Below are positions 859 to 29,743 of a stretch of DNA of 64,000 nt, in pieces. The position numbers were made by a program, and so were the translations under genes. The notes under the pieces were generated by a model. The model was given only the letters and a program-made list of their open reading frames with translations. It did not search any database and had not been told where the DNA came from. Each line of letters starts with the position of its first letter. Within the stretch, counting starts at the first letter, position 1. The DNA lies in IMG/VR virus record IMGVR_UViG_3300033143_001962, positions 1 through 64,000 of that record; one strand, written 5' to 3'.

Positions 859-897
859 AAAAAACCCCTTATACTGTAATTATCAATATAAGAGGTT
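859..897 (-). terminator. intrinsic terminator hairpin after 922..1515
   Basis: Minus strand AACCTCTTATATTG-loop-CAGTATAAGGGGTT followed by a U run. Confidence 0.65.
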
Positions 898-921
898 AGT
901 TAAAATTTAATTAAAAATTAT

Positions 922-1515: not shown

Positions 1516-1597
1516 TTTAAAATTCTCCTTTGTTTAAGAATTGCCGTTCTAAGGCTACGCGGTTGGTTCCGCATAAACTAGCTTATTCTAGCACTCT

Positions 1598-1605
1598 TAT
1601 TTATC
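1598..1605 (-). promoter_or_regulatory. T4-type late promoter variant GATAAATA
   Basis: Matches the T4 late consensus TATAAATA at 7/8 positions; about 80 nt upstream of 922..1515. Confidence 0.55.
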
Positions 1606-2401
1606 AAGTTTCAGCATTTGGGTTGGCAATTAAGTTATCAATAATTCCTAATGATTCATTGAAGAAATGATCTGCTACCCGTTCATGCCAATCTGAATCA
1701 GGATGCATTCCATCTCGTGCGCCTGTGTTCATTACAAAAGGATTGTTGTCTTGCATTTGGTGCTGTATTAGTGTTTCAACTACCGGGTTGCAGAAGAATG
1801 ACGAGTAGTGGCTGTGGAACATCGTTCTCAAAAAACTTAAATTTTTTCTAAAATTAAATAACAAGTAGTCTTCATCTACAAGTTGTTTCGGAAAGCCTGA
1901 ATCTTCAATGGCAGTCTGGATTATTTTTCCATCGTTGTGTTCGTACGGTAATTCTAAACGTGTAATTGGTGGCCAGTACACAAAGACTAAGTGAGGCTTT
2001 AAGTCTGCATCGACTTTGTAAATAGTACGAGTAACATAATCAGAACTTGCGCCGCTTGTGGATAGATTATACGCTACTACAGACTGCGTGGTATAATCTG
2101 CTATTTTTTGTTTTAACTTATTAGCCCAAATTTCATGCTGATCAACACCAACACCAACTGACATACTACACCCTACGATAAGAATTCTAAAGGCCGCTTC
2201 ATCGTAAAAACTATCTGATCTAAAGCCGTGCTCGTTAAATGTGTACTTGATATCTTTTTCGTACTGTGCGTTCTCAGGCGTGTCAGTATCCAACCAATCC
2301 ACTGTCATGTTAGGCGGATACATGTTACTTGTTGGTAGTTCCTTATCCCATGCTGTCCTTGCGCTTGTATTGTAAAGCCGTTCCCTTTGCTTCCAGGTCA
2401 T
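1604..2401 (-). CDS. SGNH/GDSL-hydrolase-like protein
   Basis: FNEHGFRSD, IVGCSMSVGVG (block I), NLSTSGAS (block II), RDGMHP (DxxH). Start moved to MTWK at 2401, which gives an ATGA overlap with the upstream gene. Confidence 0.6.
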   Translation of the reverse strand: MTWKQRERLYNTSARTAWDKELPTSNMYPPNMTVDWLDTDTPENAQYEKDIKYTFNEHGFRSDSFYDEAAFRILIVGCSMSVGVGVDQHEIWANKLKQKIADYTTQSVVAYNLSTSGASSDYVTRTIYKVDADLKPHLVFVYWPPITRLELPYEHNDGKIIQTAIEDSGFPKQLVDEDYLLFNFRKNLSFLRTMFHSHYSSFFCNPVVETLIQHQMQDNNPFVMNTGARDGMHPDSDWHERVADHFFNESLGIIDNLIANPNAET

Positions 2402-2577
2402 ACTTTTTTCACCGGGCTTCCAAAATACAATATCACCGGCCATGCTAATGCCCACGCTATTAATCGTATTATGTAATTTATAATGCTACTTGAAACACCA
2501 GACGTGTGTTGAATATACACCCAACATACTGCACCAATCACACAATACAGTAAAACAAAAATATCTATTTCAATCAT
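2398..2577 (-). CDS. small two-helix membrane protein, 59 aa (not in ORF track)
   Basis: MIEIDIFVLLYCVIGAVCWVYIQHTSGVSSSIINYIIRLIAWALAWPVILYFGSPVKKV; ATGA overlaps on both sides. Confidence 0.7.
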   Translation of the reverse strand: MIEIDIFVLLYCVIGAVCWVYIQHTSGVSSSIINYIIRLIAWALAWPVILYFGSPVKKV

Positions 2578-2924
2578 CGCACGTTCGGCTGTGGGTGTGG
2601 TAGACGTTCCGGTTGTGCTATCGTGTTGTATATAATTGTTAACCAGTGCTTATCTGAATTCTCAATAACATTACCAGTTTCGTCTAAGTAACCGGGTTGT
2701 ACTTCTTCGGTCATTTTATTAATAACGTCACATGGTACTGCCAGTGTGTCATTACCACTGTTGTAATAATTTATCATTTCCATCACGGTATCGTGATCGT
2801 ACTTGCCTGCGGCTTCTGTTCTAAAACAGTATCCAGCATTTTTTGGATTCCATAATGTAATATACGGGTCTTCTTCTTTAGTGTGCTTTACGCTTACTAT
2901 GTAGTACTTACTTATGTTTTTCAT
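2574..2924 (-). CDS. hypothetical phage protein
   Basis: YYIVSVKHT..DPYITLW.P.NAGY motif; overlaps its neighbours in the operon. Confidence 0.6.
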   Translation of the reverse strand: MKNISKYYIVSVKHTKEEDPYITLWNPKNAGYCFRTEAAGKYDHDTVMEMINYYNSGNDTLAVPCDVINKMTEEVQPGYLDETGNVIENSDKHWLTIIYNTIAQPERLPHPQPNVR

Positions 2925-3156
2925 TTGCTAGGCCTTTTAGTTGTTCAATCAACTCTTTATCAAGTTCTTCTCGGATTCCAATGGCTAATTCTCTTGCCAT
3001 GAAGTCTTGGAATGTTTCTGTTGGCGCTCCATGTTGTAATCTGTGCCATACCTTTTCTTCTTCGGTCATGCCCGCTTCGTCATCAGAAGGCATTATGTCT
3101 GTACCTCTGATATCCCAATTAGCCATTAGTGGGTTAGCTGGTTTTTTATTAGTCAC
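2908..3156 (-). CDS. WxRL-tagged mini-protein with major-capsid backbone-helix fragment
   Basis: EEEKVWHRLQ tag. FMARELAIGIREELDKELIEQLKGLA resembles MCP EIMAALAQEITAEIDQEILLSLRSLA. Confidence 0.65.
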   Translation of the reverse strand: MTNKKPANPLMANWDIRGTDIMPSDDEAGMTEEEKVWHRLQHGAPTETFQDFMARELAIGIREELDKELIEQLKGLANEKHK

Positions 3157-3454
3157 TCATCTTTCCTCTTAATTCGCTTCTGCGTCCTGATATTATAATT
3201 AAATTATTACTTTTTGCAAAGTCCATTAAATGTTTGTACATTCCAGGCGCTTCTTCTTCGAGTCTATCGTCGATACATAATCCTGATGCACTGTGCTCGT
3301 CTACGAAACACGGGTGTACGTACTTGTGATATTGCATACGTTTATTAGCTCCGAATGATGCGGCGGTTCCTGCTAATCGTTTACACCAATCGCTTGGTCT
3401 GAACTTTTTACCTTCTGTAGTTATTCCTACTATTAATTTTGTCGGGTCTGGCAT
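3149..3454 (-). CDS. DUF3579-like protein
   Basis: GITTEGKKFRPSDWCKRL...DDRLEE..P.MY..LMDFAKSNNL matches the proteobacterial DUF3579 pattern as recalled. Confidence 0.7.
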   Translation of the reverse strand: MPDPTKLIVGITTEGKKFRPSDWCKRLAGTAASFGANKRMQYHKYVHPCFVDEHSASGLCIDDRLEEEAPGMYKHLMDFAKSNNLIIISGRRSELRGKMSD

Positions 3455-3474
3455 TTTAATCCTAAATGTTTCTG

Positions 3475-3666
3475 CTATTTAGCCCCGGATAATAACTTCC
3501 AATCTTTTCCATCATACGTCCACATGTCATCCGAACTGTGATCGAAGTAGATGCTGCCGGCTATAGGTTTAGCAAGCGGGTCACTAGTGAATTTTGGACC
3601 AGTGTATTTTAATCTATCCCAGACTTCTTGCTGCTCTTTAGTTAATTGTGGTGTACGTACTGACAT
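3475..3666 (-). CDS. WxRL-tagged mini-protein with tail-fibre repeat unit
   Basis: Likely start MSVRTPQ. Tag EQQEVWDRLK followed by GSIYFDHSSDDMWTYDGKDW. Confidence 0.65.
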   Translation of the reverse strand: MSVRTPQLTKEQQEVWDRLKYTGPKFTSDPLAKPIAGSIYFDHSSDDMWTYDGKDWKLLSGAK

Positions 3667-3946
3667 GCAAGTCTGCTCCGTCAGGTGGAGTTGATTTGAA
3701 CTGTATGGTAGTTGTTGCATTACTTTCAATACTGTAATCAAGTTTATGGCGTAGTTTGCAGCCGTCTTTAAAGACTTCGAATCGCACCTTCTCCAATGTA
3801 AGTGATGGTAATGCAAATACATCGCCCCAACCGTTACCTGTGAAGTGGTTTACACTTATTAGCCGGTCGCTAGCCTGCCTTAGTATATTCCACATTTCCT
3901 TTTTAGACTTAAATGCTTTTGTTATTGTTTTCTTAGGAAGTTTCAT
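3638..3946 (-). CDS. WxxL-tagged mini-protein with virion beta-repeat domain
   Basis: Likely start MKLPKK. Tag KKEMWNILR followed by FTGNG..F...V..DG...DYSI...F..PPDGA. Confidence 0.65.
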   Translation of the reverse strand: MKLPKKTITKAFKSKKEMWNILRQASDRLISVNHFTGNGWGDVFALPSLTLEKVRFEVFKDGCKLRHKLDYSIESNATTTIQFKSTPPDGADLHVSTYTTIN

Positions 3947-4218
3947 TTTAGTCTGCGCCACATTTCCCTTTTGTGATTCTCTTTACGCTCAGCTTTATTT
4001 CTTACATGCACAAAACGTTTATGCTCTACTATCTCATCTAAGTACGGGCAGTTAAACGCAATTTTATCTATGTCATAACTTTGCCCTACTGCTTGACAGG
4101 AGGTAGCAATGTACACACCATCTTGTGATCCGTCAGGCGAGCAGGCATCAATCTCCCACTCAATGTACTCCTGGCATTGTTTATTCCAGCAAAATTCGTT
4201 AAAGACTATGTCAGACAT
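3943..4218 (-). CDS. 4-Cys mini-protein with C-terminal WxRL tag
   Basis: Likely start MSDIV. FNEFCWNKQC...SC...NCPY; ends KREMWRRLK. Confidence 0.65.
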   Translation of the reverse strand: MSDIVFNEFCWNKQCQEYIEWEIDACSPDGSQDGVYIATSCQAVGQSYDIDKIAFNCPYLDEIVEHKRFVHVRNKAERKENHKREMWRRLK

Positions 4219-4522
4219 ATTGTAGTATCCTCCAAATCTTTTCCTTTTTCTTTTGCTTCTGCTCTTCTGCCCATTCCTTTTCAAACAGAAATTTTGCGCG
4301 GGCGTTAGTAACATGCCAATCAACCATACCTTGCAAATGCACACAATTATGCGGGTACGTAGGAATGTTTTCGTCGTTGTCTAAGATCTTAGAGCATGAT
4401 GCATATTCAACAGTGGACACATGAGTTATAAAACCATCTTCCATAATTAATTCTTCGCCGTACTCACTATAGCACTCGCACTCAAAATGATCTCTGCAAA
4501 GTTCGTACCAATTATAACTCAT
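4211..4522 (-). CDS. 4-Cys mini-protein with C-terminal WxxL tag
   Basis: YELCRDHFEC...SC...NCVH; ends KEKIWRILQYV. Confidence 0.65.
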   Translation of the reverse strand: MSYNWYELCRDHFECECYSEYGEELIMEDGFITHVSTVEYASCSKILDNDENIPTYPHNCVHLQGMVDWHVTNARAKFLFEKEWAEEQKQKKKEKIWRILQYV

Positions 4523-4731
4523 TTTAATTTATCCTCAGGGATGGACATTGCATCGTGTATCCTCTGCATGTACTGTTCTCTGAATTTATGCATCGTTGGC
4601 TGCACTGCTGTTTTAATAACATCTATATCTATATCTGCCCATCTATGCCAGCCAGTCTTAGGCTTGTTATCACCTTTAAGCTTATCCCACATTATCCACT
4701 TAGCTGTCTTTGTTTTCTTCGTCTTTTTCAT
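4519..4731 (-). CDS. WxKL-tagged mini-protein
   Basis: Likely start MKKTKK. Contains IMWDKLKGDNKPKTGW, shared with 6000..6311. Confidence 0.6.
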   Translation of the reverse strand: MKKTKKTKTAKWIMWDKLKGDNKPKTGWHRWADIDIDVIKTAVQPTMHKFREQYMQRIHDAMSIPEDKLK

Positions 4732-4969
4732 ATTCTGCTCTGGCTTGTGCAAACTGTTTGTTAGTAATCGGGAGGCCGTGTATCGTCCCGTAAATATCAT
4801 CGTCAGACATTGGCTGTATGCCTACTATATCATTTGCTAATAGTGTTGGCATTACCTTTCTAATCATTGGTATCACTATACTATCAAACCCGGGCTTGTG
4901 TACTTTCTTCAAAGCCCTGAATGTTTTTTGTGCGTCACTTATTGTCTTTTTAGTTAGTTTAAAAGACAT
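4700..4969 (-). CDS. mini-protein carrying the major-capsid Gol-region fragment
   Basis: IVIPMIRKVMPTLLANDIVGIQPMS is 15/25 identical to MCP residues 60-84 in this window. Confidence 0.75.
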   Translation of the reverse strand: MSFKLTKKTISDAQKTFRALKKVHKPGFDSIVIPMIRKVMPTLLANDIVGIQPMSDDDIYGTIHGLPITNKQFAQARAEYEKDEENKDS

Positions 4970-5234
4970 CTATGTACACCGGCATGTTGTTGATCCTTTT
5001 TAAGCTCTTTTCGGGCTCTAATAATTTCTTCCACATCATATCTTTTTTCTTTGCTTCATGCTTTGCTTTCTTAATATCTTCCATGTGTGGGCAATTTTCC
5101 GCTATCTTTAAAATATTAAATGTAATCTTGCTGGTGCCGATGCTGCATGTTATACACCTACCTACTTGCATTTTAATATCAGCGAAGTGCTTACACTCCT
5201 TTGCTCTGCAAAATTCGTTAAAGTTATACGCCAT
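4959..5234 (-). CDS. 4-Cys mini-protein with WxKL tag
   Basis: Likely start MAYNF. FNEFCRAKEC...TC...NCPH, tag KDMMWKKLL, tail INNMPVYIDVF. Confidence 0.65.
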   Translation of the reverse strand: MAYNFNEFCRAKECKHFADIKMQVGRCITCSIGTSKITFNILKIAENCPHMEDIKKAKHEAKKKDMMWKKLLEPEKSLKRINNMPVYIDVF

Positions 5235-5457
5235 TCCTATCATTATACACTTGATTGAGCAATGGTTCTACACCTTTGGATACATCGCGTATAACGCCAG
5301 GGTAGAATGAACTAATATCGTAATCGACTATATGCACACCTGGTTTCATTACGTGTCCTGTCTGTGACAGACGTTTCCACATTGCATCTTGCTCGCGTTT
5401 TAATTGCTTGCGCAAGCCGTTGCGTATTTTACGTTTAGTAATTTCTATTGCATTCAT
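5224..5457 (-). CDS. WxRL-tagged mini-protein with family B DNA polymerase motif A fragment
   Basis: Tag QDAMWKRLS followed by IVDYDISSFYPGVIR (compare PolB DxxSLYPSII). Confidence 0.65.
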   Translation of the reverse strand: MNAIEITKRKIRNGLRKQLKREQDAMWKRLSQTGHVMKPGVHIVDYDISSFYPGVIRDVSKGVEPLLNQVYNDRNGV

Positions 5458-5585
5458 TTATCATCTGGCTCGTTGAATATTATTTTAGCATTTTGGTAAT
5501 CTACCTGAAGCGGTATATACGGGCAATATATATAACCTGCGTTTACCTCTACTTCCACTGGAACGAATTTTAATTTGTCCCACAT
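5454..5585 (-). CDS. 43-aa WxKL-tagged mini-protein with capsid YCPYIPL fragment (not in ORF track)
   Basis: MWDKLKFVPVEVEVNAGYIYCPYIPLQVDYQNAKIIFNEPDDK; AAGGA RBS; ATGA overlap with the next gene. Confidence 0.7.
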   Translation of the reverse strand: MWDKLKFVPVEVEVNAGYIYCPYIPLQVDYQNAKIIFNEPDDK

Positions 5586-5601
5586 TATTTCCTTATCTGT
5601 T

Positions 5602-6003
5602 TTATTCGTGTTGTCCAAACTCTACTCTCTCGGCCATATTTTTCTTAATTTGATTCTGACGGTTCATATTATGAATTGTTCTAGCAAACGATGAGCGACA
5701 TAATACTGTTAAATACGAATACGCATTGCTACTCTTAGTTTCATCGTATCTGTGATAGTACCGTAACATATTAGTAATTGCGTCTTGTATTAAGTCCTCA
5801 GCGTATGTAAACGATTGAAAATTTTTCCTAGTTAATTCTTTCTCTGCTAAATGTACAAGGTACTTTGCTAAGTTGCCAGTCGTTTGTTTAATCAGTTTCG
5901 AGTGACGTATTGCTTCGCGTAACTCTGCGTTGGTTGTGATCTCAACTTGGTTGTACCATGGTGCTTTTAACTTACGCCAAAATAATTTTTGTTCTTTGTT
6001 CAT
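5602..6003 (-). CDS. compact gp55-like (late sigma) paralogue with N-terminal WxKL tag
   Basis: TTGNLAKYL..L.E...R.N...FTY.ED....A......Y DETKSSNAYSY.T....SF.R aligns with 28673..29653. Confidence 0.75.
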   Translation of the reverse strand: MNKEQKLFWRKLKAPWYNQVEITTNAELREAIRHSKLIKQTTGNLAKYLVHLAEKELTRKNFQSFTYAEDLIQDAITNMLRYYHRYDETKSSNAYSYLTVLCRSSFARTIHNMNRQNQIKKNMAERVEFGQHE

Positions 6004-6311
6004 ACAGAAGACGATTCAAAGTCTATTAGAATGGGGCTGTTTTTAGTACGTACTGCCCGGCCAAGACTCTGGAAAGCGATCATACTTTTCCCTACACCAG
6101 ACTGTGCTGTGAATCCATTTATGAAGCTACGGTTAATACCGTGCATGAAGTTTGATGCTTCTGCAAGATTCCGCCAACCTGTTTTCTTAGGTGTATTATC
6201 GCCACTAAGCTTGTTCCATATTTGCGAGGGTGTGCCGTGTATCTTTTCAAACTGCTTACGTTTGCCGTTTGCTATCTTACGTTTATTAATCTGTACTTTA
6301 CTTTCTTTCAT
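6000..6311 (-). CDS. WxKL-tagged mini-protein with RecA/DnaB-type Walker A fragment
   Basis: SQIWNKLS...TGWRNL...GINRSFINGFTAQSGVGKSMI...ILIDFE, then the protein ends. Confidence 0.65.
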   Translation of the reverse strand: MKESKVQINKRKIANGKRKQFEKIHGTPSQIWNKLSGDNTPKKTGWRNLAEASNFMHGINRSFINGFTAQSGVGKSMIAFQSLGRAVRTKNSPILIDFESSSV

Positions 6312-6463
6312 CGTGGTCCTGTATTCTTTGTTGGCTGTTTCATCGACAAAAATATACTAGATAGTAATTTCCATTCTTTCTGTGCTTCGGTGAGTGGAGG
6401 AGTGCTTAACTTCTTCCACATTTCGTGCTGTTCTCTTTCTTCTTTTGTTTTAAATATTTTCAC
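6308..6463 (-). CDS. WxKL-tagged mini-protein
   Basis: Likely GTG start after an AGGA RBS; EREQHEMWKKLS. Confidence 0.55.
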   Translation of the reverse strand: MKIFKTKEEREQHEMWKKLSTPPLTEAQKEWKLLSSIFLSMKQPTKNTGPR

Positions 6464-6743
6464 GGTGCTTCCTGAGTTTTGCTTTTGCTTGTACCCGTGT
6501 ACTAAAATCCGTAGATTCCACATCACGCATCAAATTTGCCAGTGCATCCCTTTCTTGTGCTAATCGTTTTTCTTCTTCGTAGTCAACATCAGCAGACATC
6601 ATTCGTGCTCTAATTCTGACAGACATATCCTGATCTTTACATAATAAATCCAAGTGCTTGCGGGTATGGATTAGCTCAATCTTTTCTTCTTGCGTCAGTG
6701 CTGAAATACGTAGCACATCAAATAAGTCTGTTTCAGTTGTCAT
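6450..6743 (-). CDS. small helical-repeat-like protein, paralogue of 8065..8268
   Basis: DLF..L...ALTQ.EK...I...KHLD....D.D..VR..AR. Confidence 0.6.
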   Translation of the reverse strand: MTTETDLFDVLRISALTQEEKIELIHTRKHLDLLCKDQDMSVRIRARMMSADVDYEEEKRLAQERDALANLMRDVESTDFSTRVQAKAKLRKHRENI

Positions 6744-6900
6744 ATAACGTTTTCTTCTTGCCCATTGTTGCCATTAAGTACGATCTGACTAGATAATTAT
6801 CTTGTACCGCGAAGTTAGGATCAATCCAATATGACTCAACGGCATGCTGAATGCTTCCGTACTTTAATTTTAAAAATGTTACCACTTGTTCAATTTCCAT
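6733..6900 (-). CDS. FLxLKYGS-family mini-protein, 55 aa (not in ORF track)
   Basis: MEIEQVVTFLKLKYGSIQHAVESYW...; directly downstream of a promoter. Confidence 0.65.
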   Translation of the reverse strand: MEIEQVVTFLKLKYGSIQHAVESYWIDPNFAVQDNYLVRSYLMATMGKKKTLYDN

Positions 6901-6949
6901 TTCTAATCGCCAATAGCCGCTTGTTTATGAGGTTGCGCTTTTAAGCTAC

Positions 6950-6979
6950 ATAATAACATTTTATGTTATAAAAAGTCAA
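6950..6979 (-). promoter_or_regulatory. sigma70-type early promoter
   Basis: TTGACT-18 nt-TATTAT with TGn extension. Confidence 0.6.
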
Positions 6980-6986
6980 GTATTTG

Positions 6987-7328
6987 CTAAACATCATTTG
7001 CCAAAATTGCTGTGGCTGATGGCTTTATGCGTTTACGATCGTTGTCGTACTGAGCTGTAGCAATTTCAATACTGCTTAAATGTTTTAATAATGAGTGGAG
7101 TTTTTTATCTTCGTTGCCTAACTTTGACCACATAATGTCTTTGCTGAACAAGGTGCGAATCGCGTTAACGTTTGTTTCAATTCTTTCTAACCTGCCATTG
7201 AACTCGCCTACGTTTCCATTGTGCTGCCGGACCGTGTGTGCGAGCTTAGTTTTCAACCCCGAAATTTCATCGTCTTTGTCACGGAGTTGTTGTTGCAGGT
7301 CTCTAATTAAATTCTTCTTAGCTGTCAT
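6987..7328 (-). CDS. coiled-coil protein with internal WxKL tag
   Basis: Heptad-rich N-half; KDIMWSKLG. Confidence 0.6.
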   Translation of the reverse strand: MTAKKNLIRDLQQQLRDKDDEISGLKTKLAHTVRQHNGNVGEFNGRLERIETNVNAIRTLFSKDIMWSKLGNEDKKLHSLLKHLSSIEIATAQYDNDRKRIKPSATAILANDV

Positions 7329-7380
7329 AAATCACCTAAATGTTATCAATACTACGCTTTCTTACTACGACTACGAGCTA

Positions 7381-7409
7381 AGTATAACATTTTTTGGTGC
7401 AGAAGTCAA
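7381..7409 (-). promoter_or_regulatory. sigma70-type early promoter
   Basis: TTGACT-17-TATACT with TGn extension. Confidence 0.75.
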
Positions 7410-7582
7410 GCTTTTCGCTTATTTAGGTTAATAAAGTTGTAATTATTGTATTGTTCTTTGGAGTACAGTAGGAGTGCTTTGTGTTCGTCGTTGGATAGAT
7501 TGATATCATTGTTGACCCAAAGGTCGAATGCGTTTGTCATGCTGCCGTACTTGAGAATTAGAAAGGTTTTTGCCTGGTCCAT
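7406..7582 (-). CDS. FLxLKYGS-family mini-protein, 58 aa (not in ORF track)
   Basis: MDQAKTFLILKYGSMTNAFDLW... Confidence 0.65.
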   Translation of the reverse strand: MDQAKTFLILKYGSMTNAFDLWVNNDINLSNDEHKALLLYSKEQYNNYNFINLNKRKA

Positions 7583-7634
7583 AGTAAATATTTACCATAG
7601 TACGGCTTTTTACGTGGGGGCGCTTTTGACCCTA

Positions 7635-7663
7635 AGTATAACGTTTTGTTATTTAAAAGTCAA
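7635..7663 (-). promoter_or_regulatory. sigma70-type early promoter
   Basis: TTGACT-17-TATACT. Confidence 0.75.
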
Positions 7664-7869
7664 GTTTTTATTAGCAGTTTGAAGAACATTGCGTCTTGCT
7701 CTTGCTCAAACCAGAAGACTGGGGCGGTGTACTGATATATAAATTTGCCAGTGGTGTGCTTGCTGCACCATGCGGATAGTTCTAATAGATTATTTTTACT
7801 ATGTGTGAATGATACTTTATACCATGTGTTTCTATCAAAGGCATCGTAACATTCTTGATTCTTTTTCAT
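7660..7869 (-). CDS. small hypothetical phage protein (W-C...FWFEQEQDAMFFKL type)
   Basis: Overlaps the upstream gene (ATGA); motif style common in small phage proteins. Confidence 0.6.
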   Translation of the reverse strand: MKKNQECYDAFDRNTWYKVSFTHSKNNLLELSAWCSKHTTGKFIYQYTAPVFWFEQEQDAMFFKLLIKT

Positions 7870-8072
7870 CGGAAGTTATTTATTTTTTTCAGTATATCAA
7901 GCAACTCCGGAATGTCCGGGTGTAAGTCCGGATCAATGCTATCCAGCCAGTGCTTGAACTCTTGGTCGTATTTTTGTATATTGATTTCTTTAATGAGCTC
8001 TAATTTCTGCTCGGTGGTTAAATACTCTTTGGTTAATCTATGCCACAGTTCTTTCTTTTCTTCTTCACTCAC
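7866..8072 (-). CDS. mini-protein with N-terminal WxRL tag
   Basis: MSEEEKKELWHRLT. Confidence 0.6.
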   Translation of the reverse strand: MSEEEKKELWHRLTKEYLTTEQKLELIKEINIQKYDQEFKHWLDSIDPDLHPDIPELLDILKKINNFR

Positions 8073-8268
8073 TTTGCCATCCTAGCGTTTTAAGTTGTTT
8101 GTTTATTCTAACGTACTCTTGTTTATGCTTTTGCTTTCTTGCGTATCTTCTAACTTCACTATCATCATCGTTTTCAAAATAATCTAAGTGCTTGTTACTA
8201 GCAATGCATAACATCTTTTCGTACTGAGTGAGGGCGTTTAATTTTATAATTGTGAATAAATCTTCCAT
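8065..8268 (-). CDS. paralogue of 6450..6743
   Basis: Likely start MEDLF; ALTQYEK...KHLDYFENDDDSEVRRYAR. Confidence 0.6.
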   Translation of the reverse strand: MEDLFTIIKLNALTQYEKMLCIASNKHLDYFENDDDSEVRRYARKQKHKQEYVRINKQLKTLGWQSE

Positions 8269-8373
8269 AGCTATGTCTGTGTTTTTGCGCTTGGGCAACT
8301 CACTTCGTGCCTTGCGTTCTCTCTGTAAGTTACAGTCGAACCTACTCACCAAGCTCCTTGCTTTCGCAGACTA

Positions 8374-8403
8374 AGCATAACATATTTTAGAGGCAAAAGT
8401 CAA
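8374..8403 (-). promoter_or_regulatory. sigma70-type early promoter
   Basis: TTGACT-18-TATGCT with TGn extension. Confidence 0.6.
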
Positions 8404-8418
8404 CCGAGGTTTGCCAAA

Positions 8419-8859
8419 CTAAACGTTGTCGTTTTCATGTAGGCGTGTGTATAATGATAGTGCTAAATCAAATTGCATAATATGTGACATTATCCAGGGA
8501 CGGATTATCGATACTAAGTAGTATCCCATAACTTTTGGATTATGCGATAACTGTGATGTGTCAGCAACTTGATGACGTATATCATTGTGTGATTCTTTGT
8601 GACAATCGGCTGCTAATTTAGGAAATCCAATTCTATGCATTAGTGCTTCTTCGTGTTCTAAATGTGTGTCAACGTAGTCAACTAGCTCATCGTAGTACTG
8701 CTGAATGTGCTCTATTGTTGGGTCATCGTGTGTAATTTCGTTAATAATATTATTGCATAATTTAAACAGATTTCGGTGTTCGTTATCTATTTGTAAGTCG
8801 CCTGTTTCAAGGTCAGGTTGCCATTCTAACGGCGTTAGATTATCGGATTGTGGGGTCAT
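8419..8859 (-). CDS. bacteriohemerythrin
   Basis: W...LETGDLQIDNEH..LF, HLEHEEALM, HKESH, WIMSHIMQFD: complete hemerythrin di-iron ligand set (H, HxxxE, HxxxH, HxxxxD). Confidence 0.9.
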   Translation of the reverse strand: MTPQSDNLTPLEWQPDLETGDLQIDNEHRNLFKLCNNIINEITHDDPTIEHIQQYYDELVDYVDTHLEHEEALMHRIGFPKLAADCHKESHNDIRHQVADTSQLSHNPKVMGYYLVSIIRPWIMSHIMQFDLALSLYTRLHENDNV

Positions 8860-8891
8860 TGTATAGTCCTATTTTAAGTTAGCTATTAGTA

Positions 8892-8920
8892 ATTGTAGCA
8901 CGGAATCGCACCAAAGTCTA
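8892..8920 (-). promoter_or_regulatory. sigma70-type promoter for hemerythrin
   Basis: TAGACT-17-TACAAT with TGn; a GATAAATA late-type box also lies at 8930..8937. Confidence 0.55.
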
Positions 8921-8942
8921 GTAGTTTTTTATTTATCGTGTT

Positions 8943-9089
8943 TCATTTTAATGCAAAAAATTCGTTAAGCATATTGAATTCTGCTACTGGCATTTTAGCG
9001 ACTGCTGACCAATTCATCATCATATCATATGCTTTTTGTTGTGATCCGTACTTAATAACAATGAATGATTTTATTTCTTCAGTACTCAT
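8943..9089 (-). CDS. FLxLKYGS-family mini-protein
   Basis: Likely start MSTEEIKSFIVIKYGSQQKAYD. Confidence 0.6.
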   Translation of the reverse strand: MSTEEIKSFIVIKYGSQQKAYDMMMNWSAVAKMPVAEFNMLNEFFALK

Positions 9090-9261
9090 AAGTGTACGCT
9101 CCTGTTCGGCGATTATTGTCTTTTGCCCATTGTGCAATCAGATCTGATTCTTCTTGTGTAAATGAGGTATCATCAAATTTATACATCCATTCTTCATAAG
9201 CAAGTATCATACTACCGTACTTTAGTACAAGAATTAGTTCAGTGTCTTTACCCGTTTTCAT
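9079..9261 (-). CDS. FLxLKYGS-family mini-protein
   Basis: ELILVLKYGSMILAYEEW. Confidence 0.65.
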   Translation of the reverse strand: MKTGKDTELILVLKYGSMILAYEEWMYKFDDTSFTQEESDLIAQWAKDNNRRTGAYTYEY

Positions 9262-9403
9262 CTGACCACCATTCCATAAATTCAGTTAGCATTGCGTCGA
9301 GATCTGTACCTAAATCGTCACCTGTAAAATTACAATACACCATTACAATGTCATCATTGGACCCGTAACGTAATCTTAAATATGTTAGTACCGCTGGATT
9401 CAT
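9248..9403 (-). CDS. FLxLKYGS-family mini-protein, 51 aa (not in ORF track)
   Basis: MNPAVLTYLRLRYGSNDDIVMVY...; ATGA overlap with 9400..9618. Confidence 0.6.
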   Translation of the reverse strand: MNPAVLTYLRLRYGSNDDIVMVYCNFTGDDLGTDLDAMLTEFMEWWSDENG

Positions 9404-9618
9404 GCTTTTAACTTTGCCCACATGTACAATCTATTAATTTCTTCGTCAAACTCAGGTGTGCGTATCGTGTACCCTTTGCCGTTAATTCTATACTGGTAAT
9501 TATCAAAATCGTAAGTCTTAGGTGCAGAGACTCTGTAGTGTCTGACCCAGAACAATGTGCCATTTAAGCATTCGTATACTACATCACGTTGGTGCATTAT
9601 AACCGAGACACTATTCAT
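9400..9618 (-). CDS. RINGxxY-family mini-protein with C-terminal WxKL tag
   Basis: YRINGKGY...EFDEEINRLYMWAKLKA. Confidence 0.6.
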   Translation of the reverse strand: MNSVSVIMHQRDVVYECLNGTLFWVRHYRVSAPKTYDFDNYQYRINGKGYTIRTPEFDEEINRLYMWAKLKA

Positions 9619-9940
9619 CTTTCTTCTCCGGGACGTGGTCTACTACTAATCTAAGTTCATGCATTGTTAAACGTGTGTACATACCAGGTGGTAGATTTAT
9701 CCAGTAATGATATGCATTAAACACTGACCCGTACTTCCAAATTAGTACCATCTCGGCGTTATCTTTAGTAACATCCAATGTCTCCAGGCAGCCCTGTTCG
9801 CACCATAAATTTAATAGTGGTGGTACATTTTCAACTGTTCTGACTCCTGGCATGTTAACTGCTACTTCAAACGCTGTGATCACTTCTCCGATTGAAGAGT
9901 ACTTAAGTGACAGGAATACTTGCTGTTCATCTTCAGTCAC
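9611..9940 (-). CDS. tandem two-domain FLxLKYGS-family protein
   Basis: VFLSLKYSS and MVLIWKYGSVFNAY. Confidence 0.65.
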   Translation of the reverse strand: MTEDEQQVFLSLKYSSIGEVITAFEVAVNMPGVRTVENVPPLLNLWCEQGCLETLDVTKDNAEMVLIWKYGSVFNAYHYWINLPPGMYTRLTMHELRLVVDHVPEKKDE

Positions 9941-10124
9941 TTAGCTTCTCCCACACACGTTCTTTCTTACGTTCTTCATAAAATGCTTTTCTGTACTCAA
10001 GTGTATTTTCACTGTACAGTACATCGTTAATACGAAGTGTAACCCAGCTTTGTGAAATTGCACTTTGTCGTAGCGTACTGCATACTTGCGCAAATTTACC
10101 ACTGCTTAATTCAATTTCAATCAC
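9933..10124 (-). CDS. RINGxxY-family mini-protein with C-terminal WxKL tag
   Basis: LRINDVLY...KERVWEKLSD. Confidence 0.6.
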   Translation of the reverse strand: MIEIELSSGKFAQVCSTLRQSAISQSWVTLRINDVLYSENTLEYRKAFYEERKKERVWEKLSD

Positions 10125-10311
10125 TTAGCTTCTGCCATATCTCTGCTTTTTCAATAAATTCTGTTGCTGCTCGTCTAAATGCGTACGAATCTTTTTTGTA
10201 AATAACACCTTTAATTCTGAACGTGTGCCACGCAAAATTAGGATTCTTTAAACGTGGCACATTAGCCTTCACCCAATACCCGCAGTACTTTTCTCTATAA
10301 TGTGCTTTCAT
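10117..10311 (-). CDS. RINGxxY-family mini-protein with C-terminal WxKL tag
   Basis: FRIKGVIY...KAEIWQKLSD. Confidence 0.6.
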   Translation of the reverse strand: MKAHYREKYCGYWVKANVPRLKNPNFAWHTFRIKGVIYKKDSYAFRRAATEFIEKAEIWQKLSD

Positions 10312-12146: not shown

Positions 12147-13337
12147 TTAGCTGAAAGACAAGTTGCTTACGCTGATTTCGCCTAAGTAATCACCAGCATT
12201 ACCAAAAGATGATGCAGTGTTAGTGAGTTCCACGTAACCATAACGTGTCATGAAGCTTACAACTGGTTCGAACGTAGACGGATCTAAAACAACGCCTGAG
12301 CTCATTAAAGGAATGTAAGGGCAGTAGAACGCTGGAGCGTCTGCTTCACTTGAACCTTTATAACCAATAAGTACCGGAGTACTATCAGCAGCATATGAAT
12401 CAACATATACTTTCATAGCACTGTTTAATGTACCAACTAACTTAGTGTTAGTAGGAGCTTCAAAAGTACCTTCAGTTGTACGTGCAAATGCAGATGTAGT
12501 AGCTGATTGTAATACTGTTAATGCAGCTGGACTAACAACGGCATAGTTACCTGCGCCACGACGTGTACGTTGTGCGATAAGGTTAGCAGTACGGTTAACT
12601 AATACAGCAAGTGCCGCATGTTCATCACCTACGAATGTAGCAGTACCAGATACAGCAGCTTGATCGTAGTTGAATTCAGTTGACGCTAAAGAACGTAAAG
12701 ATAATAAAATCTCTTGATCGATTTCAGCGGTAATTTCTTGTGCTAATGCAGCCATGATTTCAGCTTCGACATCAATGCCGTGCATTGATTGTGCATCTTG
12801 AGCAGCTTCAAAAGTCCAACGCGCTTGTAACTTACGTGTCTTCGCTTCAACAGCTTGCTTTAAGATTTGAACGGAAATGTTACGACCGCCTTCACCTTCC
12901 ATTTGCGCTGTAGCAGCACCACGGTAGTCAGTCTGTGTAGCACCAACGCCTGCAGAGTATGCTTGAGCAATTTTGAAAGGACTTAACGCTTCATCACCAG
13001 CTGTAGTTGGTGTACCAGCAGCAGATGTATCGTTCATTGTTGAACCGTAACGTACACGTAAAGTATGGATCTGGCTTACTGGACCAGACATTGGTTGAAC
13101 ACCTACTAATTCGTTTGCAATTACCGTAGGCATTACACGTCGAATTACTGGTAAAATTACACGGTTTAATGTTGCAACGTTACCAGCGGCAGTAGCGCCA
13201 CTTGTAGCAGATTCTGCTAAGTGGTTACGAGTGTTTTCTAGGATTACGCCCATTGTAGAACGTTTAGTACCGTCTAGACCTTCAAGCAATGCTTCTTTAG
13301 TCTCTCCCCAACGGCCTTCTAATAGTGCTTGTGACAT
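12147..13337 (-). CDS. gp23: major capsid protein (T4 gp23-like)
   Basis: RRVMPTVIANELVGVQPMSGP, KTRKLQARWTFEAAQD..HGID.EAE, FYCPYIPL, FMTRYG. Confidence 0.95.
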   Translation of the reverse strand: MSQALLEGRWGETKEALLEGLDGTKRSTMGVILENTRNHLAESATSGATAAGNVATLNRVILPVIRRVMPTVIANELVGVQPMSGPVSQIHTLRVRYGSTMNDTSAAGTPTTAGDEALSPFKIAQAYSAGVGATQTDYRGAATAQMEGEGGRNISVQILKQAVEAKTRKLQARWTFEAAQDAQSMHGIDVEAEIMAALAQEITAEIDQEILLSLRSLASTEFNYDQAAVSGTATFVGDEHAALAVLVNRTANLIAQRTRRGAGNYAVVSPAALTVLQSATTSAFARTTEGTFEAPTNTKLVGTLNSAMKVYVDSYAADSTPVLIGYKGSSEADAPAFYCPYIPLMSSGVVLDPSTFEPVVSFMTRYGYVELTNTASSFGNAGDYLGEISVSNLSFS

Positions 13338-27797: not shown

Positions 27798-28686
27798 GAA
27801 GCTCCTTTGGGTATGTATATGTCCATAATTCTGTTGTTGTTTTGGGAAAGTCGTCACCAATGTCATTACATCTTAATTCGAGATTTAATTCTTCTCTAAG
27901 ATATTTTTGTATGTATGCTTCGTCGTATACGGTACTGTCGTCTGGCATGTTGCAATTAATGTGTTTAGTAAAGTTATCTAAGAACAGTGCTATATCTTTG
28001 TCCTTATTAAGGTGCTTTTGTAAGCTTAACATTTCATTGTGATTTGTCATTATAGTGTCGTAACTTTCGGTTACGTCGAAGTTAAGTTCACGCGCTAACC
28101 GCATTAATGTATTTTTAAAATCAAATAATAAATCTTTGATGTTGATTTCAATACACTTGTCCTTGCTATTATATTCGCCAACTGAATTTACGCCTTTGAT
28201 AAATTCTTTATAACTGTAAAATTCTCGCATGTTTGCAACTTTTGAAAAATCCTCATCATTGATTTCTTTTCTATGCTGGTCTATTAGATATCTGTCATGA
28301 ACTTTATCGTGCTTGTTGTTGCGAATTAATAAATGCATGTCTGCGTCGGATCTAATTAATATACCTTTGACAACTTTTGATAAAATGTAATCAACACTTT
28401 CACCAGCACTCGAATCGGTTAAGTCACGCTCGTCATTAAATACATGATGCATTCGGAAAAACGGAAGTGTGTCTGGCCCGTGTACATGTTGCTCGAACGT
28501 AGGCATGTTAATCCTTGAGTTATATATTGTGAAATTTTTCTGCGTGTGAGAATTGCCATTCTTTCCCCACGGCAATTCCGGACTATCACAAAGCCCAATG
28601 CTGGTAAAATTGTTAAGTACCCAATAAAGATACGACCCGTATGCTCCAGGCTCGTATATTATAGGTATTGTTTTACTTTTTGTCAA
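27790..28686 (-). CDS. hypothetical protein, possible sulfotransferase-like P-loop fold
   Basis: N-terminal IIYEPGAYGSYL loop. Confidence 0.35.
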   Translation of the reverse strand: MTKSKTIPIIYEPGAYGSYLYWVLNNFTSIGLCDSPELPWGKNGNSHTQKNFTIYNSRINMPTFEQHVHGPDTLPFFRMHHVFNDERDLTDSSAGESVDYILSKVVKGILIRSDADMHLLIRNNKHDKVHDRYLIDQHRKEINDEDFSKVANMREFYSYKEFIKGVNSVGEYNSKDKCIEINIKDLLFDFKNTLMRLARELNFDVTESYDTIMTNHNEMLSLQKHLNKDKDIALFLDNFTKHINCNMPDDSTVYDEAYIQKYLREELNLELRCNDIGDDFPKTTTELWTYTYPKELHE

Positions 28687-29653
28687 GTTTCTCGTCTGTT
28701 AAATGTTTGTCGTCTGAGTTGTCATTACTAAACTGTCTAGTCCAGCTAGGAGTTAGTCCGTTAGCTTCTAAAATGTCATCACGTATGTTCTGCATCTTCT
28801 TCTCGATGTTTAGTACCCTGGTAAAGCTGTTAGTAACTGCGGCAGTGTAGTACGCAAATGGATTTTGTGATTTCATTTCATTAAACTGTAGTCCAATTTG
28901 ACTAAGCTGTAATAAAGCTTGCCCTTGCATCTCATCATTGTAAGTATAACCACGCCAGTTACTGCGCGTTCCGTAACGTTCGCATAACTTCATGTACATC
29001 ATTGCTAAGTTGCCAGTCGTCCGCCCGTGATCTTTATTAAATGCACCAGTTTCTAAATCACCTTTCCAATGACTCTTACCTACTAGCTGTACTGCCATAG
29101 CATTATCGCCTTCCATAGCAAACCCGTGGTCTGCTAACTTTGAAACACGGTAGTGATAAAATGCAGGAAAGCCACAACGCATAGGAATCATTTCTACTTC
29201 GAGCCCAGTGCCGTCTAGTAACTCTAATTCATCGTCGTTTAATAAATCATCAAACACTGCATTAGCTTTTGCCTGCTTAGCCGCTTTAGCAGTAGCAGCT
29301 TTTGATTTCTTTTTAGGTACAAGTGGAATGTGTTCTGTAGTCATTACTCTGTAAACTACATCTTCTAATTTGATATCTTCTAATTCGGTGGGAATGTCAA
29401 GCTTTGTTAAGCGTGTTGCCCTTGCCTGTCTGCCAAGTAGTGTAACCGGTACGTCTTCCATGATGGGCTTTCCATCTTTGTCTTTGCTTACTTCGACATT
29501 TTGTGTACCCCAAATGTCCGATAAGTTTTCTACTATGAAGTCTTGTTGATTGTCTTCTACTTTGTCCAGAAAAGAACAGTATGAAATTTTACTTAAGTGT
29601 ATCTCTTTCAACATATCCTTGTTATTTAAATAATTCTTTTTACGTTTAGCCAT
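28673..29653 (-). CDS. gp55: late transcription sigma factor (gp55-like)
   Basis: NYLNNKDML, RSNWRGYTYNDEM, FNEMKSQNPFAYYT; adjacent to gp47/gp46 as in T4; likely start MAKRKK. Confidence 0.85.
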   Translation of the reverse strand: MAKRKKNYLNNKDMLKEIHLSKISYCSFLDKVEDNQQDFIVENLSDIWGTQNVEVSKDKDGKPIMEDVPVTLLGRQARATRLTKLDIPTELEDIKLEDVVYRVMTTEHIPLVPKKKSKAATAKAAKQAKANAVFDDLLNDDELELLDGTGLEVEMIPMRCGFPAFYHYRVSKLADHGFAMEGDNAMAVQLVGKSHWKGDLETGAFNKDHGRTTGNLAMMYMKLCERYGTRSNWRGYTYNDEMQGQALLQLSQIGLQFNEMKSQNPFAYYTAAVTNSFTRVLNIEKKMQNIRDDILEANGLTPSWTRQFSNDNSDDKHLTDEKLDKK

Positions 29654-29681
29654 ACATCTCCTTGTAGCTTTAGATTTAACT

Positions 29682-29709
29682 ATTATAGCACATAAGCATA
29701 ATAAGTCAA
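29682..29709 (-). promoter_or_regulatory. sigma70-type promoter for gp55-47-46 operon
   Basis: TTGACT-16-TATAAT with TGn extension. Confidence 0.7.
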
Positions 29710-29743
29710 CCATAATTTATTATATTGGGTTATAATATGTACT

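Follow-up and report, generated by a model that had tools for sequence, protein, structure and literature searches.

Mini-genes of an uncultured giant phage join a shared helical handle to short copies of core phage protein motifs

The locus analyzed here raises the question of whether a run of tiny overlapping genes in an uncultured giant phage, each seeming to join a common helical tag to a short piece of an essential phage protein, is a real and selected gene family, and what such proteins could be for. A first-pass annotation of the 64,000-nt stretch analyzed (hereafter the window) had described such an array at positions 2908 to 6463, proposing that it may be a library of early-expressed baits for defence sensors or, alternatively, a set of dominant-negative poisons. 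Our analysis confirmed the observation, which extends beyond those coordinates. The interpretation, however, was only partly supported: the design, a shared tag fused to short conserved pieces of core phage proteins in an operon predicted to be early and under selection, holds and recurs in dozens of related metagenomic phages, whereas both functional readings are inferences without direct evidence. This design has not been described before.

We first searched for the tag. The pattern [MILFVW]-W-x-[KRI]-L, preceded by a charged helix, occurs 17 times in real ORFs on the minus strand between 3051 and 10140; in the other ~54 kb it occurs 5 times, all in stop-ridden frames, while we estimate from composition that about 0.1 hits would be expected by chance between 3051 and 10140. 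The Leu codons (TTA/CTA/CTT/CTG) and the Lys/Arg codons (AGA/AAG/AAA/CGT) vary, thus the motif is conserved as protein and is not a DNA repeat. Within 2908-6463, 12 of 14 ORFs carry the W tag; ORF 4700 carries an F variant, and 3149-3454 is an untagged DUF3579. The features of the locus, together with two parent genes, are as follows (MCP, major capsid protein).

6987..10311, minus strand: upstream continuation of the tagged set, with 6987-7328 (IMWSKL), 7866-8072 (LWHRL) and three small hairpin-plus-helix proteins ending in the tag (9400-9618, 9933-10124, 10117-10311), interleaved with LKYGS-family paralogues.
6950..6979, minus strand: sigma-70-like promoter (TTGACT-18-TATTAT with TG) at the head of the operon that runs from 6900 down to about 2400; it belongs to a repeated promoter family (repeat families D1 and D9).
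6308..6463, minus strand: tagged mini-ORF of 51 aa starting at GTG 6463 (HEMWKKLS), cargo unidentified.
6000..6311, minus strand: full N-terminal handle (INKRKIANGKRKQ...IWNKLS) followed by a DnaB-type Walker A block (AQSGVGKSMIAF).
5602..6003, minus strand: small gp55 paralogue of 133 aa with an N-terminal tag (LFWRKLK), lacking about 55 C-terminal positions of the gp55 profile.
5454..5618, minus strand: tag (IMWDKLK) followed by the MCP C-terminal block AGYIYCPYIPL (window MCP 331-344; T4 gp23 443-456).
5224..5457, minus strand: full handle (ITKRKIRNGLRKQ...AMWKRLS) followed by a PolB motif A block (DYDISSFYPGVIRD).
4959..5243, minus strand: Cys-rich (probable zinc-binding) module, then tag (MMWKKLL), then a conserved tail INNMPVYIDVF.
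4700..4969, minus strand: F-variant tag (KTFRALKK) followed by the MCP N-terminal block IVIPMIRKVMPTLLANDIVGIQPMS (window MCP 60-84; T4 gp23 95-119, the Gol-equivalent region).
4519..4731, minus strand: Lys-rich N-terminus, then tag (IMWDKLK), then a 50-aa cargo; the start overlaps ORF 4700 by 32 nt in the +1 frame.
4211..4522, minus strand: Cys/His-rich module with the tag at the extreme C-terminus (KIWRILQYV*).
3943..4218, minus strand: Cys-rich module, a paralogue of ORF 4959, with a C-terminal tag (EMWRRLK*).
3638..3946, minus strand: tag (EMWNILR) followed by a beta-rich domain weakly resembling a repeat of the 4342-aa protein.
3475..3666, minus strand: tag (EVWDRLKYTGP) followed by a tail-fibre motif (G.IYFD....WTYDG..W).
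2908..3156, minus strand: tag (KVWHRLQHG) followed by an MCP helix block (window MCP 186-219).
12147..13337, minus strand: parent gene, the phage's own MCP (396 aa; phrog_138, 1.7e-97), followed by an intrinsic terminator at 12098-12123.
28673..29713, minus strand: parent gene, the long gp55-type late sigma factor (346 aa; phrog_12791, 5e-72).

To evaluate the origin of each piece, the mini-ORFs were compared with Pfam and PHROG profiles, with the proteins of the window (using shuffled sequences as controls) and with their counterparts in related assemblies, designated here by L numbers, P numbers denoting individual relatives of the mini-proteins. Copies of core-protein blocks are supported in ORFs 4700, 2908, 5454 and 5602. 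ORF 4700 matches the window MCP with 15/25 identical residues and an E value of 7e-9, passes the Pfam Gp23 cut-off (35.2 bits against 24.4) and hits phrog_138 at 9e-9. ORF 2908 matches its MCP block with 0/2000 shuffles reaching the score, and its orthologue in L083 (12219-12419) hits Pfam Gp23 at 0.027 and phrog_138 at 0.016. ORF 5454 matches the MCP at 9/14 positions (0/2000 shuffles), and a full-handle orthologue, P0035, sits in the same position after the small gp55 in L087. ORF 5602 hits the gp55 family phrog_234 at 8e-22 (profile positions 26-126 of 181) and shares 29% identity over 86 aa with the long gp55, its orthologues being L083 11625-12020 and L087 1030-1452.

Other pieces are also supported, although in some cases through their relatives. 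For ORF 5224, 9 of 12 weak tblastn records are DNA polymerase genes, the block is conserved in L083 (7462-7917), and the handle scores 47.5 bits with the handle HMM. ORF 6000 scores 63.4 bits with this HMM; its Walker A is weak by Pfam alone (divDNAB, 0.14), but P0021, P0024 and L083 7886-8113 carry the same block, the L083 counterpart hitting the DnaB-like helicase family phrog_19 at 4.8e-5. ORF 3475 matches the tail-fibre-like protein at 52847-54340 with 0/2000 shuffles, and its L083 orthologue hits DUF2793 at 0.006. The resemblance of ORF 3638 to the giant protein is weak (13/500 shuffles; phrog_11431 at 0.008). Two assignments made in the first-pass annotation are not established: the tail of ORF 4959 is not significantly similar to the MCP (163/2000 shuffles), and the supposed portal piece of ORF 4519 is not significant against either portal, giving a p of about 0.016 only against a portal-type cargo of a relative. 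ORF 4211 has an orthologue at L083 11318-11638, and the overlap between ORFs 4519 and 4700 is conserved in L081.

The motif proved to be the end of a roughly 36-residue N-terminal handle (M.E.K..RKIRNG.RKQ..EK.VW.RLK), which defines an unannotated and entirely metagenomic family. The handle HMM finds 58 clusters at 50% identity and 66 at 90%; of the 58, 56 are 44-146 aa long with the handle at residues 1 to about 38, followed by variable cargo. Of these 56, 16 pass E<=0.01 against Pfam Gp23 and 13 against phrog_138, and there are also portal, helicase and AAA hits, while about 17 cargos are unidentified, bearing in mind that detection is biased toward conserved blocks. Among relatives, P0051 matches the window portal with 0/2000 shuffles and P0052 matches the T4 gp17 Walker B region with 3/2000. 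The cargos thus comprise copies of up to four blocks of the MCP, DnaB-type Walker A, PolB motif A, a truncated gp55 and a tail-fibre motif, and in relatives also portal and large-terminase Walker B. The same handle carries PolB or DnaB cargo in the window and MCP cargo in L083 and L002, and the design recurs in independent assemblies (L081, L083, L002 and L086-L090). No PDB, Pfam or PHROG match to the handle was found. AlphaFold predicts the handle as one helix, residues 6-38 (pLDDT 82-95), and the cargo as flexible plus a lone helix, with a pTM of 0.36.

We next asked whether these genes are selected, since a dN/dS near 1 had been set beforehand as a result that would argue for neutral debris. 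The values obtained were 0.15 for ORF 4700 (orthologue P0002) and 0.19 for ORF 4959 (orthologue in L081), with dS above 1. The residues retained are those invariant in the parents, whereas synonymous sites are not shared with the parent gene, so that the resemblance is old and maintained at the protein level. Regarding timing, repeated sigma-70-like promoters (TTGACT-N17-TATACT) lie in the array, and T4 late promoters (TATAAATA) are absent there, while TATAAATA sits directly upstream of the portal and baseplate genes; early expression is therefore a prediction from sequence.

Taken together, we consider as demonstrated that this is a selected, modular family of small phage proteins, predicted to be early, each with a long basic N-terminal helix ending in hydrophobic-W-x-K/R-L (in some members only that last turn remains, placed at the N-terminus, internally or at the C-terminus), followed after a flexible linker by a cargo of 15-45 residues copying an invariant block of a T4-type capsid, portal, large terminase, DnaB-type helicase, PolB, gp55 or tail-fibre protein. 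What these proteins do is inferred. Our favoured reading, held only tentatively, is that the cargo works by mimicry, pairing with whatever normally packs against or binds that block in the unassembled or partly folded parent, while the invariant handle would dock all members on one common partner, either a host or phage hub such as a protease or chaperone, or one another; the very strong conservation of the handle fits the common partner already suggested in the first-pass annotation. The expected result would be sequestration or poisoning of T4-type replication, late transcription, packaging and assembly proteins early in infection, the most likely target being, in our opinion, a co-infecting, faster T4-type phage in the same cell. 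The phage's own late proteins would be spared because the mini-proteins would be made only early and are probably short-lived, and the truncated gp55 would be the same device at domain scale. Most parents are homo-oligomeric machines (capsid, portal ring, terminase ring, hexameric helicase, trimeric fibre) in which defective subunits can act below stoichiometry, and a sigma-like protein without its activator-binding end is a standard competitive design. However, several cargo blocks (Walker A, Walker B, PolB motif A, the capsid helix) are buried core elements and not obvious interfaces, which makes binding to a folded parent doubtful; the pieces are about as similar to the phage's own proteins (48-60%) as to foreign T4-type ones (39-55%), so that avoidance of self-poisoning rests on assumptions about timing and turnover; and a rival arriving after the early phase would not be hit.

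Nearly as likely, though equally short of being established, is that the cargo peptides are immune decoys occupying host sensors that detect invariant features of core phage proteins, such as those of the STAND/Avs, CapRel or Lit type, without activating them, with the handle providing stability, oligomeric avidity or an inhibitor-recruiting function. The parent list (capsid, portal, large terminase, DNA polymerase, helicase, tail parts) coincides with the trigger list for Avs families (PMC13581612), the block of ORF 4700 equals the Gol-equivalent region of T4 gp23, which works as an isolated 29-residue peptide with EF-Tu and is the most conserved part of gp23 (PMC3014915), the setting is that of an early, hypervariable accessory region typical of counter-defence genes, and this model carries no self-poisoning problem. 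Nevertheless, structurally characterised Avs sensors recognise folded capsid protein, Avs7 doing so by shape complementarity over about 3,700 square angstroms (PMC13581612), whereas the cargo is short and predicted to be unstructured or a lone helix. Moreover, late capsid protein would vastly outnumber early decoys, a Gol-like peptide would be expected to activate Lit rather than block it, gp55 is not a known trigger, and a passive decoy does not need so strictly conserved a handle.

We regard as unlikely that the handle has a function unrelated to the ancestry of the cargo, for example as an RNA- or DNA-binding arginine/lysine-rich helix comparable to lambda N or as a membrane or hub anchor, the core-protein pieces being incidental linkers captured by recombination in a hyperplastic early region and retained only as spacers or folding elements. 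The handle is indeed basic, with invariant R, K, N and Q residues and a Trp near the helix end, as in arginine-rich RNA-binding peptides, the tag also sits on unrelated Cys-rich and hairpin-plus-helix proteins, and the region is highly mosaic, 79 of 80 capsid-gene flanks in relatives lacking the array. On the other hand, the cargo is far from a random sample of a 250-kb genome, at least 16 of 56 being gp23 blocks and the rest hallmark motifs of a few core genes, the parent-invariant residues are exactly the ones kept under a dN/dS of about 0.15, and no repeated hairpin that could serve as an RNA target was seen in the array. Still less likely are RiPP-like precursors, in which the handle would be a leader recognised by a modifying enzyme and the cargo a core peptide that is modified and perhaps released; the conserved N-terminal part, variable C-terminal part, tandem precursors and sizes would fit, and a radical-SAM gene lies inside the L083 array (8974-10005), but no radical-SAM or other maturase occurs in the window array, in L087 or in L089, the window's radical-SAM (23166-24173) is unrelated to that of L083, no RRE, peptidase or transporter was found in the ten larger proteins scanned against Pfam, no double-glycine-type cleavage motif is visible in the family sequences, the short tag also occurs at C-termini and inside proteins, and RiPP logic does not explain why the cores copy core-protein motifs. 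Finally, neutral debris or an assembly artefact might be suspected because the ORFs are small, overlapping and lineage-restricted and most have no database family; this is effectively refuted by their independent recovery from IMG/VR, ENA, Logan and NCBI assemblies, by the low dN/dS with saturated dS, by the conserved gene overlap and by the absence of nucleotide-level similarity to the parent genes.

Among known systems, the microProteins (miPs) of plants and animals, such as Id and LITTLE ZIPPER (reviewed in PMC9638782), are also small proteins derived from a piece of a larger one, which keep only the part engaging the parent or its partners and act as dominant-negative regulators; however, miPs are single eukaryotic genes keeping a whole interaction domain, while here arrays of phage genes carry 15-45 residue pieces from many unrelated parents fused to one handle, and interaction is only inferred. 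The small T4 early proteins Srd and Srh resemble segments of host sigma-70 and sigma-32 and have been proposed to act by mimicry, ORF 5602 being a truncated gp55-type sigma, but they mimic host proteins, carry no shared handle and do not belong to a multi-parent family. The T4 Gol peptide, with Lit and EF-Tu (PMC3014915), comes from the gp23 segment to which the ORF 4700 cargo aligns and shows that an isolated peptide from this block can be biologically active; Gol, though, is part of the capsid protein and triggers an abortive-infection protease, whereas here the block is a separate, predicted early gene with a handle. Poxvirus K3L, a pseudosubstrate mimic of eIF2-alpha, is likewise a short viral copy of part of a larger protein used as a competitive mimic, yet it is a single gene copying a folded host domain, while the present copies come from the virus's own class of proteins, are mostly unfolded blocks and occur in many modular versions. 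RiPP precursor families with a shared leader, such as the prochlorosin ProcA peptides, combine a conserved N-terminal part with variable C-terminal parts and many paralogues in one genome, but here no consistent maturase, cleavage motif or Cys/Ser/Thr-rich cores are present, and the cargos are recognisable copies of core-protein motifs.

The 249,797-bp viral contig IMGVR_UViG_3300033143_001962, of which positions 1-64000 were analyzed, is that of a jumbo myophage with T4-type core genes. Its portal is about 50% identical to those of Pseudomonas phage PA5oct and Agrobacterium phage Atu_ph07, and the genes identified include the major capsid protein (MCP, 12147-13337), a prohead protease, an SbcCD-like nuclease and a long gp55-type late sigma factor (28673-29713). 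No cultured phage is close at the DNA level; megablast of positions 2500-8500 against cultured phages returned no hit.

A strong intrinsic terminator follows the capsid gene at 12098-12123, with a -35 TTGACT element immediately after it, and from there down to about position 900 the minus strand is packed with small, often overlapping ORFs (named here by their lowest coordinate). A repeated promoter family (AAAAGCTTGACTT-N17-TATACT) lies in the intergenic gaps at 12096, 11575, 10524, 8403, 7663, 7409 and 6979, whereas the T4 late-promoter octamer TATAAATA is absent from this region. The genes from 6900 to about 2400 therefore look like one operon read by host RNA polymerase, which predicts, from sequence alone, early expression. 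The promoter elements and other features of this setting are as follows.
7378-7415, 7632-7669, 10493-10530, 11544-11581 and 6972-6989: a 38-nt promoter cassette repeated in intergenic gaps of the array, reading AAAAGCTTGACTT-N17-TATACTTAG on the minus strand and recalling the mobile early-promoter cassettes of T4-type hyperplastic regions.
18281-18288, minus strand: octamer TATAAATA, 22 nt upstream of the portal start.
20389-20396, plus strand: octamer TATAAATA, about 28 nt upstream of a T4_baseplate-family gene; both octamers fit gp55-dependent late transcription in this phage.
8419-8859, minus strand: a hemerythrin-domain protein (Pfam 5e-13) among the early mini-genes.
3149-3454, minus strand: a DUF3579 protein (1.4e-25), also among the mini-genes; the relative L083, described below, has an IscA-like protein at 12429-12746 in the corresponding place.
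6733-11277, minus strand: at least 12 paralogues of a roughly 60-aa family with the N-terminal motif F/L-x-L-K-Y-G-S (for example 11086-11277, 10883-11086, 10321-10497, 7406-7582 and 6733-6900), of which one gene, 9611-9940, holds two copies; the family is also found in the relatives L002 (3520-4200) and L083 (5582-6463), and no Pfam or PHROG match was found.
9400-9618, 9933-10124, 10117-10311 and 11277-11516, minus strand: a small family with a beta-hairpin (F.F.I.G..Y) followed by a helix ending in the W-x-K-L tag at the C-terminus, also found in L002 (3039-3296 and 3298-3495), two copies of which sit directly after the capsid gene in the closest relative; Pfam, PHROGs and the PDB gave no hits, and the confidence of the AlphaFold model (pLDDT 56.8) was too low for a fold search.
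6450-6743 and 8065-8352, minus strand: a paralogous helical family (LF..L.I.ALT..EK...), a separate gene in the window but fused in one ORF to the tag plus the PolB motif A block in L083 (7462-7917).
35706-39098 and 39102-52130, plus strand: a 1130-aa ORF preceding a 4342-aa ORF; in the relatives L087 and L089 the handle mini-genes lie between the counterparts of these giant genes and the baseplate genes instead of next to the capsid gene.

A search for hydrophobic-W-x-K/R/I-L found 17 hits in ORFs on the minus strand between 3051 and 10140, while in the remaining 54 kb there were only 5, all of them in stop-ridden frames. The residues preceding the tag are rich in Lys and Glu, and Gly or Pro usually follows within a few residues. 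The tag lies near the N-terminus in most ORFs, is internal in two and sits at the extreme C-terminus in five (3963, 4237, 9423, 9956 and 10140). Leu and Lys/Arg codons differ between copies and many tags have I, V, L or F before the W, thus ruling out a DNA repeat or a start-codon artefact and placing the conservation at the protein level. We also considered that the tag might derive from the capsid sequence upstream of the mid block or from the capsid N-terminus; however, the extended cyanophage alignment does not align the W, and the N-terminal resemblance fails at the defining positions. Nor does the tag behave as the capsid-targeting sequence of T4 internal proteins, an N-terminal peptide ending in a prohead-protease site on late-expressed proteins, since its position varies, no cleavage motif follows it and no TATAAATA late promoter lies in the array.

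In ORFs 6000-6311 and 5224-5457 the tag is the end of a longer conserved module, M..K..I.KRKI.NG.RKQ...W..LS.TG, which we term the handle and which also occurs in L083 and L002. A profile of these four sequences searched against 1.84 billion representative proteins returned 58 hits at E<=1e-3, sixteen of them at E<=1e-10; of those hits, 56 are proteins of 44-146 aa with the module at residues 1 to about 38. A second search counted 66 clusters at 90% identity, every named one being a "hypothetical protein". None is in the cultured-phage collection, against which tblastn of the handle found nothing, and Pfam, PHROGs and the PDB hold no model for the module. With a 15-sequence alignment AlphaFold predicts the handle as one continuous helix (residues 6-38, pLDDT 82-95) followed by a low-confidence linker and a C-terminal helix, with a pTM of 0.36. 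The other tagged ORFs in the window match only the last 11-18 positions of the handle profile. Eleven of the 56 handle proteins (P0018, P0019, P0021, P0023, P0027, P0028, P0031, P0032, P0035, P0039 and P0046) end in [S/T]-x-[A/V]-COOH (..DTTA, ..GSTA, ..DITA, ..DSTV), and ORF 6000 ends the same way (...ESSSV); this ending could be a C-terminal degron or a PDZ-type ligand.

The pieces carried after the tag, termed cargo, were compared with the phage's own proteins and with profile databases, with the following results for the window.
4700-4969: matches the window MCP at residues 60-84 (15/25 identical, E 7e-9), passes the gathering score of the Gp23 major capsid protein family (Pfam PF07068; 35.2 bits against 24.4) and hits phrog_138 at 9e-9; aligned to T4 gp23 this is residues 95-119 (VMGMVRRAIPNLIAFDICGVQPM).
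ORF 5454: carries AGYIYCPYIPL, matching MCP 331-344 with 0/2000 shuffles reaching the score.
ORF 2908: matches MCP 186-219, with 0/2000 shuffles.
ORF 5602: a truncated gp55 (phrog_234 8e-22), matching profile positions 26-126 of 181 only, without the C-terminal part, and thus a truncated paralogue of the long gp55 at 28673-29713.
ORF 3475: matches the tail-fibre-like protein 52847-54340, with 0/2000 shuffles.
ORF 5224: contains DYDISSFYPGVIRD; tblastn at E<=10 gave 12 records, 9 of which fall in annotated DNA polymerase genes from three unrelated phage groups.
ORF 6000: contains AQSGVGKSMIAF, a weak match on its own (Pfam divDNAB 0.14).
ORF 3638: a weak match to the giant protein (13/500 shuffles).
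ORF 4959: the resemblance of its tail to the capsid protein is not significant (163/2000 shuffles).
ORF 4519: a portal origin of the cargo is likewise not significant.
The last two assignments, which the first-pass annotation had proposed (the portal one only as possible), are not established. The 29-residue Gol region lies in the first quarter of gp23, is its most conserved region and binds EF-Tu (PMC3014915); the Gol region spans residues 93-122 of gp23.

Relatives settled the doubtful cases and showed the generality of the design. We retrieved 80 capsid-gene flanks from relatives with 79-89% MCP identity, but only L002 has tags there and the other mini-ORFs have no orthologues in those flanks; the array was found instead by searching with ORFs 4959 and 4700. 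L083, from a 344-kb contig, holds a syntenic array of 15 tags within 4.5 kb, flanked by the same genes as in the window.

Pieces identified in the L083 array (ORF; content; evidence).
11092-11352; handle + RRLRASWTVDVAKDLESLHGIDVEQELADILISEIAAE; Pfam Gp23 46.4 bits, E 5e-12.
10610-11035; tag + MCP N block + second tag; Pfam Gp23 26.6 bits.
12219-12419; orthologue of ORF 2908; Pfam Gp23 0.027.
7886-8113; tag + ELVVIAARRGAGKTMYF; DnaB-like helicase phrog_19, 4.8e-5.
7462-7917; tag + DNDISSLYPSMM; PolB motif A block, by alignment.
12001-12216; tag + tail-fibre motif; DUF2793 0.006.

Across the 56 family members, 16 hit Pfam Gp23 at E<=0.01 and 13 hit phrog_138. Matches to the Gp23 model cover only profile positions 4-48, 147-190, 168-196 or 312-326 of 376; these are therefore fragments and not capsid proteins with the full HK97-type fold. 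Among the handle proteins, P0051 carries a portal block (0/2000 shuffles against the window portal), P0052 carries the terminase Walker B region (3/2000 shuffles against T4 gp17), and P0021, P0024 and P0056 carry DnaB-type Walker A blocks, while about 17 cargos are unidentified. Further variants were seen in the relatives L090 (337-621) and L086 (406-585): one has a poly-Arg N-terminus, the tag variant LLETFDAL and the capsid N block, and the other has the handle plus LRGMHFSGLYVDEW, which is the Walker B region of the large terminase. The same handle carries different cargo in different genomes, so the modules are shuffled, although the order small gp55, then handle plus FYCPYIPI mini-gene, is conserved in the window and in the relatives L087 and L088.

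A 656-bp ENA contig (L081) carries orthologues of ORFs 4959 and 4700 and the start of ORF 4519. The values of dN/dS are 0.19 and 0.15, respectively, with dS above 1. The cargo of ORF 4700 shares 53/75 bases with its parent, but only 8 of 13 degenerate identical codons have the same third base, and the ORF 5454 block shares 1 of 9. The pieces are therefore neither recent copies, products of gene conversion nor DNA-level decoys; they are old and are kept similar to the parents as protein. A decayed collinear second capsid gene was also rejected, since the blocks are out of order, lie in separate conserved ORFs and are under purifying selection. The start of ORF 4519 is an ATG inside the Lys/Glu-rich 3' end of ORF 4700, in the +1 frame (4700-4731, minus strand; L081 553-581); this overlap of about 30 nt and the internal ATG are conserved in L081, at 68% protein identity, which rules out a frameshift or sequencing error joining the two ORFs. 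No Shine-Dalgarno sequence precedes this ATG, so translational coupling or a +1 shift on GAA-AAA-G cannot be excluded.

The arrangement pointed out in the first-pass annotation, small genes joining a shared tag to pieces of core phage proteins, is real. The accompanying interpretation is partly supported: the design holds, whereas the functional reading, as baits for defence sensors or poisons against co-infecting phages, is hypothetical. What our analysis shows is a very strongly conserved handle and a cargo that reproduces invariant blocks of T4-type core proteins; that the handle, predicted to be a helix, has one common partner, that expression is early, and that the cargo binds a parent protein, its partners or a defence sensor are inferences. 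We tentatively favour handle-tagged competitive or dominant-negative mimics directed at T4-type machinery, most plausibly that of a faster co-infecting phage: most parents are ring or lattice oligomers, where poison subunits are potent, the truncated gp55 fits a competitive design and is not a known immune trigger, and a conserved handle fits recruitment better than passive decoying. The immune-decoy reading, also tentative, is nearly as likely, since the parent list coincides with the triggers of Avs families (PMC13581612) and this model has no self-poisoning problem; however, those sensors recognise folded proteins over large surfaces, as published for Avs7, which argues against decoys of this kind but does not exclude them.

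Other readings are less likely. Incidental cargo on a nucleic-acid-binding or anchoring handle is doubtful; no repeated boxB-like hairpin, as would be expected near the genes of a lambda N-type arginine-rich peptide, was found among the inverted repeats of 1-12300, although this does not exclude a trans RNA target elsewhere. RiPP-like leader and core peptides are also improbable: a conserved N-terminal part with a variable C-terminal part is indeed present, but a consistently adjacent maturase with a leader-recognition domain, peptidase or transporter is not. A 343-aa radical-SAM protein (CPMQCDFC) is embedded in the middle of the L083 array (8974-10005), yet none is present in the window array, L087 or L089, and it is unrelated to the window's radical-SAM at 23166-24173. 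Neutral debris is effectively excluded. A more far-reaching possibility, which we consider unlikely although compatible with the data, is a protein-level guide library, in which the constant handle would be analogous to a repeat and the variable peptides, copied from the least mutable blocks of rival phages' core proteins, to spacers. Each peptide would steer one common effector bound by the handle, such as a protease, chaperone or sequestering scaffold, onto the matching capsid, portal, terminase, helicase, polymerase, sigma or fibre protein, which would amount to programmable, peptide-guided interference between viruses.

If these proteins work by mimicry, they are a natural library of minimal peptides, each of which would mark a block of a core phage protein that cannot easily mutate and that something in the infected cell must recognise. 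This would reveal a new way for viruses to fight either host immunity or each other, would point directly at the recognition determinants of core-protein sensors, and would offer ready-made peptide inhibitors of T4-type assembly, packaging and replication, together with a portable handle whose partner is a new hub. Irrespective of function, a 60-cluster, unannotated family that fuses one handle to fragments of at least seven different core proteins is a new pattern of gene evolution in phage hyperplastic regions.

Literature searches on decoy, mimic, fragment and microprotein concepts in phages found no description of this design, and we consider it a new kind of element whose existence is well supported and whose function is, on present evidence, a matter of inference. 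The nearest concepts are eukaryotic microProteins, T4 Srd and Srh, the Gol peptide, viral pseudosubstrate mimics and shared-leader RiPP families. As in microProteins, the proteins described here are small, homologous to part of a larger protein and lacking that protein's functional domains; however, none of these known systems combines one handle with fragments of many different core proteins in arrays.
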